Of a stretch of 64,000 nt of DNA, positions 29,107 through 34,227 are shown piece by piece. How positions within the stretch are numbered: the first letter of the stretch is position 1; the number at the start of each line of letters is the position of its first letter. Under the pieces are notes generated by a model, which was not told where the DNA came from, did no database searches, and worked only from the letters and a program-made list of their open reading frames with translations. The DNA comes from Schmidtea nova (Eukaryota): the NCBI GenBank assembly GCA_044892505.1, contig CM097883.1, positions 259,222,001 through 259,286,000 on the forward strand. The letters run 5' to 3'. Both the position numbers and the translations under genes were made by a program.

Positions 29107-32100
29107 TTATATTGACAAAAAACTCTCCGAAAAATAAATCAATTTAATAAAATGCACCACAAATAGCCAAAGTTTGCTCAGGCAAACTTTGGCTGAAACA
29201 TTTCCCCCCACCTTGATCCCTTCTAGCGGATCAACCGACCTATTCATCTCTGGGGGGCCAACCTTCAACTTCCTAACTTTATTCTTCCACTTCGGCTTAT
29301 TTATAAGTTCAGTCGCTTCTTCCTTTTTACATTTAATACTAGAATTTCCGATAACATCTTCATAATTTCCTAGATCTGTTTCAACATCGTTAATTTTTCC
29401 ATTTTCCCTTTTATCAACATTGGAATTTTCAATTATTCCCTGCCTAATGTTTTCACCATTAAAAGAGTTCTCTCCAATAATTTCCTCAAAATTACAATTT
29501 TCTTCAATATCGCTAATATTTCCCACAACTTTCTCATCGACCATGCAGTTTTCTTTAATATCGTTAATATTTTCTACAATTTTCTCATCGACAATGCAGT
29601 TTTCTTTAATATCGTTAATATTTTCTACAATTTTCTCATCGACAATGCAGTTTTCTTCAAAATTATATTCACCTACTGCTTGCCCATTTTTCACTGATAT
29701 TGTAGATTCAATTTCCGTCATTACTCCTTGCACTAAATCGTTTGAAGAAGTATTTATTCCATCCTCGCCTACAATATCAACCGACTCAGAGTTATCAACC
29801 ATTTCACCAGACACACCGCTATTCACTGCGCTATTCTTACCTCGACCTGAATTCAATTCACCATCACCAGTTCGAACCTCACCAAGAACTACTTCCTGAG
29901 TTTTAGGTGCAAAACTCTCGATACATTCCTCTTCACACTGTTCTCTGTGACAAGTCTCCATTAACAAACTTTTATTCTCGGCTGTCCTTTTACTGTCATC
30001 CATTTTACCAAATATGTTATCATTTATTATGTTATCTTCATTTTGACAAAACCTCATGTGTTCTGTATGTGTTTCTTCAACTTCCTGGTATCGCTGGAGC
30101 TGTTGTTGGAACACTTCATTTGTTGTAAAATATGATTGGATGAAGTGTGTCTGTCCACAGCTCGGAATGCCTGATCGTTCTTTCCCGATGCAAGTCCATC
30201 CCAATGGAGTTAACCTAGCTATCGGTTCTCCTTCACGTCCCCATATCTCTTTAATTGCTTTTTGTAGACCTGCATAGTCAGCCCCAATAAGCGCATCTAC
30301 CGATAATCTACTTCCAGCCGTTGCAAATCTGATTCGTCTCAAATGGTCCCAGTTCAGACTTGCTTTTTTCCAATCGGTCACTCGCAAATCACTTGTTACC
30401 TTCGCTACCGACCAAGCATGAAATTCTTTGACCATGGTACTATCTAAACTCATTAAGTTCATTGTGACTCTCTGCGCCTCCAAATTTTCCCTTTTGCCTC
30501 CTATTACTCTAACTGGAACATTAACTTTTGATCCTGATAATTGCAATTCTCTAGACACATACATACTAACATAACTAACCGTACTTGCATCATCTAGTAA
30601 TGCGTTGACCGTTATTCTTTTTCCCCTCGATTCTAAAATGATAGGTATCGTCCTGAGGCTTATGTAACCCATATCATTTGACTTTCTATTTGTAACCATT
30701 CTAGTAACATGTGTTTGGGGTTTTTGATTGCTGTCCTCTCCTGATTCCTTTTCTCTTCGACTATGCAACAAACTATGATGTTTTCCCCCACAGTCTTTTT
30801 CCTTAAAAAATCCTGGTCTGGTGCATTCTCTCACTCCATGTCCTTTCCTTAAGCAGTTATAACATAACCTCCACTCTTGAACTAACTTTTTTCTGTCATT
30901 TACTGGCAATTGTTTGAATTGTGAGCATTGATCTAGATAATGTGCACCCGGACATTGGAAACACATCGACCTGCTTTGACCTTGTTGCATGATTACTCCT
31001 TCCCCACCTTTACTCGAGTTTTGTTTTACTTCATTGCCCGAGTTCGTAAAGTGTGAGTACCTTCTATTGTCATTCTTTTCGGAAGCCTTGAAGTTCTTCT
31101 GCCCGTACTGCCAATTAGAGTCTTTTTCACGCCCAAATCCATATAATATCTCATTTGTCGATCGCGTAAGATCAGCTTCGCCTTGCAACCACTCTTTTAA
31201 CCGGGTTATTGATTCTTCCCCTTCATCTTTCGCTTGCTCTCTTTTCCATCGAATAAGTAGCGAAGCTGGCAATTTCTTTAACAATTGTTGCAAGAGACAG
31301 CCTCTCTGTAAGTCCTCTTCCCTTCCGATTGCTTTAAACCGTACCTCCATTGACTCCAACAATCCAACGAAAACATCCAAGTCTTTCATCTCTCCTTCGC
31401 GAACCGGCCGGAATTTCTCTACGGTCTCTAACATGGTCAGATAACTACGTTCTTCACCTCCGTACCGCCTTTCTAATTTCTCTTTCGCCATCTTGTAGCC
31501 ATCGGCGGTATAACCCAGTGGCTCTATCATTCTCAGTGGCTCTCCTAGCAAGTACTGCCTAAGATGCAGCATTTTATCTTCGGCTGTTCCATCTGCCGTA
31601 TCTATTACCGTATTGAAGGCCGCTTTCCACGTCTCAAACTCGACAACTTTCCCATCGAAAATCGGAATCTTTATTTTCTGCAACCGATTTAAACTCTTCT
31701 TTTCTCTTGGCGCCTCATATTCCGATGTCTTTGACCCCTCGCTCACAACACTTTGTTCTGTTCTTTTTTGCATTATCTTATCTATCTCTTCTTTTTTTGT
31801 TTCGAGCTCACAGATATCTTTTTCCACTAATTCTAATTCCTCCTTCTTACTTAATTTGTCACACAACTCGACAAGTCTTAGCCACTCGTCCAATGTATCC
31901 TCAAATTCTTTCTCATATAATACCAGTGTGTCCTTTATTTCCCCGACCATTTCTGCCAACAATAAGTTACGCGCTCGAGTTACTTTCCATTTTTTAGATC
32001 GCCGACGGGTCCATAAACCTTTAAACTCTTCCTCATCATTACCGCCTCTTAAACGAAGAACAAGATGAAGAGTAGATTCCTTTTGTATGTTGTAATCTGC

Positions 32101-33546
32101 CAAGATTCTTCCGCCTTCCAATTGTTTACCCGCAAATATCAATCTCTGTTGATCAGGTGGGATTCCCTCTTTGTCTTGAATTTTCGTTTTTACCTTTTCT
32201 ATTGTGTCACTTGATTCAACTTCCAGGGTAATAGTTTTCCCTGTTAGCGTTTTTACAAATATTTGCATTCCCCCTCCCAATCTCAAAACTAGACCGAGAG
32301 CTGATTCCTTGGTGGGAATAGTCGCATTTCGATTAATTAACTTAGTGAAAGCGCCGCCCCGAGTTTCAATACCCAACGAAAGCGGTGTAACATCTAGCAA
32401 TAATACATCAATCACATACTCAGCAAGAACTCCTCCCTGTATTGCTGCTCCCAATGCAACAGCTTCATCTCGATTCACACTCTTACTAAGAACTCTACCG
32501 AAAAGTTTCTGTACAGTTTCTTGAACATTAGGCATTCTTGTCATCTCACCAACTAACAACACTTCTTTAATGCCCGATATTTTTACCTCTACATCTTTAA
32601 TACCTTTTTCACAAGGTTCAATTGTTCTCTTAATTAGGTGCTCCACCAATTGCTCTAACTTTGACCGTGTGAACCTTAAACTCAACTGTTTAGGTCCTGT
32701 ATTATCCATTGTCAAATATGGAAGATTAATGTGCGTTTGAATAGCTGATGACAATTCAATTGTAGCATTTTCAGCTGCTTCTCTAACTCTCTGTAAAGCC
32801 AGAGGGTCTTTATTAACATCAACGCCTTGATCACGTTTAAATTCATTACCGATACATTGTAAAAGCACATTATCAAAATCTTCCCCACCCAAAAACGTAT
32901 ACCCACTTGTAGATTTTACTTCAAAACTATTATTCAGATTTTTTATATAATTATCTCGCTTTAGCTTAATGATTTCCCAGTTGAAACACTCATAGTTGAT
33001 TTTAAATCCATAATTTTTAACCTCTCGCCCTATCTCTCTAATCATCGCTGTATTATACATCATTTCTTTTGGAAGACACCCCTTATTCACACAAGCCACA
33101 CCCGTTTTATTTTTTCCAATTAAAGGAACAGATCTCCTAAATCCATCTGTTCCCCTGGCTATTTCGTCCCCCAATTGAAAAGAATGCTGGGGCCCATAGC
33201 AGCATCTTTTCCGGTCCCTTAATGGACCCAACCCACCGCAAAACATGGTAAAGGGCAGAGGGGGAAATGTTTTAACCCAAATTACTTTCCAATTTTTACT
33301 ACATTCCCAAAAAATTTCAACTAAAACATAAAAATTACTACATTTATATATACAAAAAACTTCCAATAAAAAATCAAAAATATTGCATTGAAATACCTTG
33401 TTCTGGCTGGATAGCCAGAACCATATTCTGAAGGATCCAGAAAGCACGTGGTCCCCCGATGGGAACCACGCTCTGCTACCAGAAATGTTTGTGATAAAAC
33501 GTAACGCCCTTTCAATGATTTTATTGGCATATGTTTTGAACATCAC
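29107..33546 (-). CDS. Chimeric polyprotein ORF: leader - mtHSP70 fragment - ubiquitin - BEL/Pao Gag - protease - acidic tail
   Basis: 1479-aa open frame, in frame with the upstream calmodulin ORF (34227-33546 = 681 nt). Confidence 0.8.
29201..29214 (-). promoter_or_regulatory. Polypurine tract
   Basis: AAGGTGGGGGGAAA immediately before the TG of the 3' LTR; encodes the GGNV-type end typical of BEL/Pao ORFs. Confidence 0.8.
29503..29655 (-). repeat. Three 51-bp in-frame repeats ([17 protein letters not shown]) in the acidic tail
   Basis: Read directly from the sequence. Confidence 0.85.
30184..30663 (-). CDS. BEL/Pao aspartic protease region (DUF1758-like)
   Basis: [44 protein letters not shown]. 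Confidence 0.8.
30763..32040 (-). CDS. BEL/Pao Gag (DUF1759-like region + zinc knuckles)
   Basis: [37 protein letters not shown]; [34 protein letters not shown]. Confidence 0.88.
32041..32268 (-). CDS. Complete ubiquitin monomer (76 aa) fused in frame to Gag, preceded by the tail of another ubiquitin unit (32269-32310)
   Basis: [11 protein letters not shown]...[10 protein letters not shown]; six differences from human ubiquitin (P19S, N25K, A28T, D52G, T55I, S57A); upstream [14 protein letters not shown]. Confidence 0.95.
32302..32925 (-). pseudogene. HSPA9: Captured mitochondrial HSP70 (mortalin/HSPA9-like) internal fragment, 208 codons, intronless
   Basis: [63 protein letters not shown]; conserved sites altered (VGEMTR, NRDE, SGYT). 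Confidence 0.88.
33464..33481 (-). promoter_or_regulatory. Primer-binding site complementary to initiator tRNA-Met
   Basis: TGGTAGCAGAGCGTGGTT, 4 nt after the LTR-terminal CA; complements the ..CTCTGCTACCA 3' end of eukaryotic tRNAi-Met. Confidence 0.85.
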
Positions 33547-34128
33547 AAGAGGAGATTGAGGATCAATTATAAAGTTATTGTAAATTGCAAGACCATAATC
33601 GGGGTTTGAAACTTAATACACAACAAGTACGAAGAACGCCCTTTCAATGATTTTATTGGCATATGTTTTGAACATCACAAGAGGAGATTGAGGATCAATT
33701 ATAAAGTTATTGTAAATTGCAAGACCATAATCGGGGTTTGAAACTTGATACACAACAAGTACGAAGAACGCCCTTTCAATGATTTTATTGGCATATGTTT
33801 TGAACATCACAAGAGGAGATTGAGGATCAATTATAAAGTTATTGTAAATTGCAAGACCATAATCGGGGTTTGAAACTTGAGACACAACAAGTGCGAAGAA
33901 CGCCTTCAATGTTTTGAACATCACAAGAGGAGATTGAGGATCAATTATAAGGTTATTGTAAATTGCAAGACCATAATCGGGGTTTGAAACTTGAGACACA
34001 ACAAGTACGAAGAACGCCTTCAATGTTTTGAACATCACAAGAGGAGATTGAGGATCAATTATAAAGTTATTGTAAATTGCAAGACCATAATCGGGGTTTG
34101 AAACTTGAGGCACAACAAGTACGAAGAA
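33505..34128 (-). repeat. Tandem array in the 5' LTR: 5 units (S,S,L,L,L)
   Basis: Same unit as 27225-28622; unit 5 carries CAA>TAA at 33615-33613. Confidence 0.9.
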
Positions 34129-34227
34129 TTCCTTCATTACCCAAATCGAAACGTCACCATCTTTATCGAAAGGAGAAAATGCTTCTTTGAATTCAGCAAT
34201 TTGCTCTTCTGTTAACTGATCAGCCAT
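34129..34227 (-). pseudogene. CaM: Calmodulin 5' fragment in the 5' LTR; supplies the ATG of the long frame
   Basis: Identical to 28623-28721. Confidence 0.9.

Follow-up and report, generated by a model that had tools for sequence, protein, structure and literature searches.

Why should a single reading frame run through a retrotransposon from one long terminal repeat (LTR) into the other, crossing the primer-binding site (PBS) and a leader that is normally untranslated? The question is raised by a Bel/Pao-type LTR element in a 64,000-nt stretch of the Schmidtea nova genome (contig CM097883.1, positions 259,222,001 to 259,286,000; hereafter the window). The element and its frame lie on the minus strand, and all coordinates are positions in the window. 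A first-pass annotation of this DNA described a frame of 1707 codons from 34227 to 29107, broken by a single TAA that it took for a private lesion, and suggested that a calmodulin start captured in the 5' LTR had become the translation start of the element. We consider it probable that the locus is a recent insertion of a non-autonomous Bel/Pao derivative in which translation would start upstream, read through the leader, and free Gag at the C-terminal GG of an in-frame ubiquitin. The parts of the element, from its 5' to its 3' end, are:

29107-34227, minus strand: entire frame (1706 codons and the terminator), interrupted by one stop and free of frameshifts

33486-34687, minus strand: visible part of the 5' LTR, ending in AAACA at 33486; its first bases lie in the N run 34688-34945

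34153-34227, minus strand: calmodulin start, the ATG and first 25 codons; 24 codons are identical to calmodulin in solved structures (PDB, E=7e-15, residues 1-27)

33503-34152, minus strand: 5' LTR array, five units of a HECT E3-ligase fragment (UBE3A/E6AP HECT domain, E=1.4e-5; Tandem Repeats Finder, TRF), carrying the one stop

33464-33481, minus strand: PBS-like 18-mer that begins TGG, 4 nt past the LTR end, with the in-frame reading G-S-R-A-W-F

33127-33463, minus strand: leader without recognisable coding origin, including a stretch of 20% GC; open in frame, no homologue

32932-33126, minus strand: glutathione reductase fragment, ~65 codons in native frame (PDB, E=1.3e-11, chain residues 30-94), abutting the HSP70 piece

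32296-32928, minus strand: mitochondrial HSP70 (stress-70) fragment read in its native frame, one uninterrupted stretch of 208 residues (Pfam HSP70, E=3.7e-77, profile positions 209-420 of 599; PDB, E=1.8e-87)

32041-32310, minus strand: ubiquitin, the tail of one unit and a complete unit ending in R-G-G (Pfam ubiquitin, positions 1-72 of 72, E=2.7e-28)

30673-32040, minus strand: Gag, with DUF1759 at 31231-31659 and two CCHC-type knuckles near 30830-30965

30020-30672, minus strand: Pao-type protease region, where homology to relatives ends, just before their reverse transcriptase (RT)

29110-30019, minus strand: tail without homologue where RT, RNase H, and integrase would be expected, extending through the polypurine tract and 91-93 nt into the 3' LTR

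29201-29223, minus strand: polypurine-tract-like run directly 5' of the 3' LTR

27225-29200, minus strand: visible part of the 3' LTR, starting with TGTTTC at 29200; its end lies in the N run 27080-27224

First, we focus on the extent of the frame, for which our recount agrees with the earlier description. Between the ATG at 34227 and the terminating TAA at 29109-29107, the frame contains one TAA, no TAG, no TGA, and no frameshift. An in-frame TGA is located 12 nt 5' of the ATG, and the visible LTR further upstream, 460 nt in length, is closed in all three frames by 10, 10, and 15 stops. Thus, the frame opens exactly at the calmodulin ATG. From there on, every segment of the element has zero stops in this frame, except for the single one in the 5' LTR array, whereas each segment contains 4 to 56 stops in the other two frames. 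For the parts without recognisable coding origin, the expectation was obtained from first-order Markov simulations. In the 375 nt formed by the LTR end, the PBS, and the leader, the simulations expect 6.5 stops, and only 0.085% of trials contained none; in the 909-nt tail they expect 24.5 stops, and a stop-free tail occurred in 0 of 20000 trials. The observed number is 0 in both cases. Chance is hence excluded as an explanation of the open frame.

The simulations likewise bear on the idea that the element is a dead relic in which the long frame arose by coincidence, or that errors in assembling a scaffold rich in repeats and gaps produced it. The window indeed contains 15 N runs of 142-300 bases each, two of which lie exactly on the outer ends of the element, and the array has different lengths in the two LTRs (five units vs. 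at least 11). However, bases 27225-34687 are continuous without a single N, and independent relatives from other sources share the layout described here. We regard coincidence or artefact as highly improbable.

The LTRs provide a date for the insertion and for the stop. Positions 33503-34687 and 27997-29181 form a pair of 1185 bp that is 99.83% identical, with two mismatches, suggesting a very recent insertion. Both outer LTR ends are hidden in N runs, so that no target-site duplication is readable. One of the two differences is the stop itself, and the other 15 array units in the window are open at that codon. This indicates that the stop arose after insertion, as a substitution. The 3' LTR contains the same calmodulin start at 28647-28721, followed by 11 stop-free array units. 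Two further explanations of the stop were rejected. An alternative code in which TAA encodes Gln, as in some AT-rich protists, does not fit one TAA and no TAG against 68 CAA/CAG among 1706 codons, nor a metazoan family; programmed readthrough does not fit a stop that is missing from the matching 3' LTR unit and from all other units. As a separate observation, the arrays are unequal in length (at least 11 units in the 3' LTR vs. five in the 5' LTR), although the shared 1185 bp differ at only two bases. This points to slippage, whether in reverse transcription or later than the insertion, or to an array collapsed in the assembly.

Upstream of Gag, the frame strings together pieces of host genes. 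The five pieces (calmodulin, a HECT ligase, glutathione reductase, stress-70, and ubiquitin) all keep the native frame of their source gene, and this frame is also that of Gag. Each array unit consists of two pieces of the HECT domain that are joined by an in-frame internal deletion and remain in the native frame, and the spacings of the units are all 114 or 132 nt, both multiples of 3. In the ubiquitin piece, 70 of 76 residues are unchanged relative to ubiquitin, and the final eight residues of the preceding unit align as well. The presence of this preceding unit end suggests that a polyubiquitin mRNA was the source. Both the 208 residues of stress-70 and the 84 residues of polyubiquitin align without interruption. 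The joint between HSP70 and ubiquitin lies in a K-(E/K)-S stretch shared by the two, which fits capture by template switching.

Three of these features, namely the HECT origin of the array, the glutathione reductase origin of part of the leader, and the ubiquitin-GG-Gag junction, through which the arrangement would become workable, are absent from the first-pass annotation. That annotation treated 579 nt of stop-free leader as normally non-coding DNA. The stretch is indeed open in frame, but its last ~65 codons are the glutathione reductase fragment and thus of coding origin. An intron in the AT-rich leader was also considered and rejected, as none of the three obvious GT...AG pairs, which were picked by eye, would keep the frame and an intron was not predicted by any tool.

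To place the element among its relatives, we gathered sequences by protein search with the Gag-protease part; the relatives are represented by predicted proteins. The matches are Bel/Pao polyproteins of many metazoans and are 32-42% identical to the element. Gag of the window is colinear with P0001 and P0005 at 39-40% identity. Its DUF1759 is detected above the Pfam cut-off (E=1.9e-10), and the CCHC knuckle gives a weak profile score (E=0.064), with two C-X2-C-X4-H-X4-C-like motifs being read directly from the protein. The protease profile Asp_protease_2 matches below its cut-off (E=7e-4, 20.7 bits vs. 24.3), and the region is colinear with the protease region of the relatives at ~40% identity. 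A single unbroken tblastn match to P0004, P0379, and P0005 extends over 30019-32268. At the position of the retropepsin D-S/T-G motif (30560-30600, minus strand), the window reads L-L-D-D-A-S, as do the autonomous relatives P0001, P0004, and P0005. D-A-S is thus common to the lineage and not a private defect.

The fusion of ubiquitin to Gag extends beyond this copy. In the window, the GG of ubiquitin directly abuts Gag, and the next residue, which is not Met, aligns with the N-terminus of Gag in the relatives. The seven best matches, P0001 to P0007, carry ubiquitin or a C-terminal remnant of it, and so do P0232, P0295, P0347, and P0379 (a cluster mate of P0001). Among ~100 other Bel/Pao matches from molluscs, cnidarians, a sponge, and others, no ubiquitin match was found. 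In the relatives, the end of ubiquitin is located 130 to 155 residues before DUF1759, as it is in the window. The GG end is present in ten of the 11 relatives (P0001 to P0007, P0232, P0347, and P0379), or in 11 of 12 sequences with the window included, while P0295 ends in E-G. The GG is kept even where the relatives' ubiquitin has diverged to 25-35% identity with that of the window. The residue following the GG is Met in only three relatives and is not Met in the window and seven other relatives. Hence, a full-length Gag requires a start further upstream. In a neighbour-joining tree of the Gag-protease part (48 sequences, 200 bootstraps), the ten longest ubiquitin-bearing sequences, including the window, form one split in 200 of 200 bootstraps.

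The relatives also show read-through of the PBS. The peptide G-S-R-A-W(F/L), which corresponds to the PBS of the window translated in the frame of the element, is present in P0004, P0006, and P0007 and partially in P0347. It is preceded by 60 residues in P0004, 529 in P0006, and 130 in P0007, and the upstream part of P0007 includes a tandem array with a 10-residue unit. In P0002, ~100 residues of AT-rich, low-complexity leader are translated without a stop. Furthermore, host pieces precede ubiquitin in the relatives as well, but they derive from other genes: kinesin and Sec23 in P0002, HSP90 in P0005 and P0347, and zf-TRAF in P0006. Relatives that are autonomous, with full RT and integrase, have this layout too.

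Taken together, the exclusion of chance, the native frame of five host pieces, a Gag without its own start, and the read-through of the PBS in P0004, P0006, and P0007 suggest that translation begins before the leader, which is normally untranslated, and that the frame is maintained for this reason, a conclusion we consider well supported. Alternatively, translation might start further down, at the Met of ubiquitin or at an in-frame ATG in the leader or the host pieces, with transcription beginning downstream of the calmodulin ATG and the open LTR being a leftover of recently captured and amplified coding sequence. Ubiquitin does have its own Met directly after GGG, and the ORFs (open reading frames) of P0379, P0232, P0003, and P0001 begin in the leader or inside ubiquitin. 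As the array units are 96-99% alike, one open unit would stay open when copied, and a single 132-nt unit is open by chance in ~11% of simulations. The ATGs in the upstream LTR would also favour a start further down. Such a start, however, leaves several independent one-in-three coincidences to be accepted, at the join of calmodulin to HECT, the internal deletion in HECT, the unit length, an 18-nt variant, and the phase between array and PBS. In addition, the LTR end, PBS, and leader would have stayed open over 375 nt (0.085% of simulations), and P0006 keeps 529 codons open upstream of the PBS peptide. We therefore consider a downstream start unlikely, though it deserves more weight than the relic or artefact discussed above.

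Within the preferred account of an upstream start, the calmodulin ATG is a plausible candidate for the actual start codon, judging from its sequence context. It has an A at -3 and a G at +4, and no ATG occurs in any frame in the preceding 147 nt, for which the probability by chance is ~0.05. The LTR contains TATA-like boxes at 34586 and 34545, and poly(A)-like hexamers are found at 34272 and in the 132-nt array units. Of the earlier suggestion that the captured calmodulin start became the translation start, one part thus stands well supported, namely a frame kept through a start upstream of the leader, while the choice of the calmodulin ATG itself is only plausible.

Several points weigh against this account. 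Five ATGs lie between the TATA-like boxes and the calmodulin ATG and would hinder scanning if transcription starts at those boxes, and a transcription start upstream of the calmodulin ATG is itself something we infer from sequence. The ORF of P0379 starts downstream of the expected PBS peptide, so that not every member of the lineage opens its frame in the LTR. That the relatives' sequence upstream of the PBS peptide belongs to an LTR is presumed from predicted proteins, for which gene callers choose the farthest available start. Adding four very distant sequences to the tree places them inside the ubiquitin-bearing group and dissolves the split (12/100); a single origin of ubiquitin thus depends on the rooting. 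Searches of protein databases without the source genome, made with the Gag-protease part, the stretch from the last array unit across the leader to HSP70, and the tail, returned no sibling copy and no protein above 42% identity to the element, and conservation of the frame within the family is putative. Finally, with a stop in the frame and neither RT nor integrase, nothing says that this locus itself is expressed.

How could such a frame work? In the lineage, it would begin upstream of Gag, either in the leader or in the 5' LTR. For the progenitor from which this copy derives, the most likely start codon would be the calmodulin ATG, presumably situated in R/U5 of the LTR, and the stop in the array would have been acquired since. 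Ribosomes would read through PBS and leader in one phase until they reach ubiquitin; in Ty1, too, the PBS is located within the GAG ORF (PMC4974528). Host deubiquitinases would then cut after the GG, free Gag with a proper N-terminus, and discard the upstream part. Deubiquitinating enzymes cut any ubiquitin-X fusion after the GG. In viral polyproteins, those of pestiviruses, cellular ubiquitin hydrolases cut the junctions between ubiquitin and protein (PMC8310069), and by analogy a similar cleavage may occur here. The discarded part would be constrained only to stay stop-free and in phase. Such a tolerant region might serve as a landing site for pieces of abundant host mRNAs, acquired through template switching in reverse transcription. 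Template switching onto co-packaged abundant mRNAs is an established route to chimeras of this type (PMC13317346). The HECT-ligase fragment would have been amplified to an array after its capture. More tentatively, and with somewhat less confidence than doubt, we propose for the lineage as a whole that captured ubiquitin was fixed as a host-cleaved Gag adaptor, that translation starts in the LTR with the PBS, the signals for packaging and dimerisation, and the leader being translated and not scanned, and that in-frame host pieces accumulate upstream and are expressed and released as free polypeptides.

The 3' half of the frame shows what the element has lost. No Pfam match to RT, RNase H (Peptidase_A17 model), or integrase was obtained in the element, and in tblastn searches with full-length relatives the match to the element ends at 30019-30073, where the RT of the relatives begins. 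To judge from this, RT, RNase H, and integrase were lost as one deletion, and the element is non-autonomous and not a complete member of Bel/Pao. The tail that takes their place contains three 51-nt in-frame repeats at 29498-29657 (TRF), and its 303 codons have no homologue in profile and protein searches.

Owing to its composition, the locus could also be read as a host chimeric gene that arose by retrotransposon-mediated exon shuffling and is kept for a host function, in the manner of maize Bs1. One long ORF unites pieces of five host genes with gag in an element that lacks RT and integrase, the tail stays open for 303 codons without any homologue, and Bs1 provides a precedent (PMC13317346). 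The near-identity of the LTRs (99.83%) and thus the very recent insertion speak against a host gene, as does the one break that the frame of this copy already has. Moreover, autonomous relatives with full RT and integrase share the layout, and none of the host pieces, all short internal fragments, contains a complete domain. A host gene hence appears improbable, and we retain the non-autonomous retroelement with an upstream start.

Some further features of the element concern its RNA and its surroundings. The leader contains a hairpin:

33183-33206, minus strand: hairpin of 7 bp with a GGGCCC palindrome in the loop and the in-frame reading Y-G-P-Q

It is present in both the minimum free energy and the centroid fold, the region being no more stable than shuffled sequences (z = 0.69). 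A Y-G-P-(Q/R/M) box is located 15 to 80 residues before ubiquitin in P0002, P0004, P0006, P0007, and P0379, in flanks that are otherwise unrelated. The hairpin looks like a candidate cis-acting RNA signal, e.g., a dimerisation site. Known RNA families were not detected in the window. The 64-kb window contains no tRNA genes. Further copies of the element are absent from the 64-kb window as well. The GC content is 33-41% inside the element vs. ~22% in the window outside it.

Elsewhere in the window, other mobile elements have left traces. Two adjacent ORFs at 6651-8405 (minus strand) combine a reverse transcriptase (RVT_1) with a GIY-YIG nuclease, as Penelope-like elements do. A reverse transcriptase fragment at 44007-45627 (minus strand; RVT_1, E=9e-22) does not match the Bel/Pao relatives, and a DDE_3 transposase fragment of the Tc1/mariner type is located at 48805-49566 (minus strand). 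An ORF fragment at 38962-39363 (plus strand) matches the protein tyrosine kinase domain (E=5e-13) and is probably an exon of a host gene.

What would this arrangement mean for LTR elements? They face a conflict at their 5' end: the leader must fold for priming, dimerisation, and packaging, yet ribosomes must reach gag. Beside scanning and internal entry, the arrangement suggests a third solution, in which the leader is translated and host ubiquitin hydrolases trim it off. This would also explain why the lineage collects in-frame host fragments, and it bears on exon shuffling and on chimeric proteins that originate from retroelements. If true, the lineage would represent a natural device for exon shuffling and for the expression of protein fragments on a mobile element, with calmodulin, HSP70, HSP90, kinesin, Sec23, TRAF, HECT ligase, and glutathione reductase among its cargo.

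Compared with known systems, the element resembles Bel/Pao (Belpaoviridae) in its LTRs, PBS, and polypurine tract, in a Gag with DUF1759 and CCHC knuckles, and in a Pao-type protease region. It differs in lacking RT, RNase H, and integrase, in the fusion of ubiquitin to Gag, in a frame that opens in the LTR and crosses the PBS, and in having five host pieces in frame. In a survey of Bel/Pao elements in metazoan genomes, the word ubiquitin is absent (PMC3118150), and a full-text literature search returned no description of ubiquitin-Gag Bel/Pao elements, which is not proof of their absence.

A leader that is translated has a counterpart in yeast Ty1 (Pseudoviridae). Gag of Ty1 starts a few codons upstream of the PBS and does so with its own sequence. 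As in our element, the coding frame passes through the PBS and the leader is coding (PMC4974528). Unlike in Ty1, which belongs to a different family, hundreds of foreign codons precede the PBS in the element, and ubiquitin is placed between them and Gag. The capture of host sequence resembles maize Bs1, transducing LTR retroelements, and the gag-fusion genes of transducing retroviruses, in which pieces of host mRNAs and gag share one ORF, pol is missing, and propagation depends on a helper (PMC13317346). Bs1 is a single case whose host pieces lie in the internal region, whereas the pieces described here lie upstream of Gag and in the LTR. In addition, the pattern recurs across the lineage with different host genes, and ubiquitin would offer a way to shed them.

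The junction itself is built like that of ubiquitin fusion genes such as polyubiquitin and ubiquitin-ribosomal protein genes, where a complete ubiquitin ending in GG directly precedes the next protein. A viral parallel is provided by the ubiquitin insertions of cytopathogenic pestiviruses, at which cellular ubiquitin C-terminal hydrolases generate the authentic N-terminus of the following protein (PMC8310069; PMC13517609). The pestivirus insertions are sporadic, occur within infected animals, and are located between non-structural proteins, whereas ubiquitin in our element is fixed and lineage-wide and sits at the N-terminus of Gag, where cleavage is presumed. Polyproteins with host-like domains, TRAF-type domains included, are also known from planarian Burro and from LTR elements of bdelloid rotifers (PMC6431247; PMC5408684). 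In these, whole accessory domains or ORFs are thought to act, while the element carries truncated internal fragments for which an open frame is the sole visible constraint. In sum, this non-autonomous Bel/Pao element transduces host sequence, opens its frame in the LTR, and has a presumed ubiquitin-Gag adaptor that is found across its lineage.

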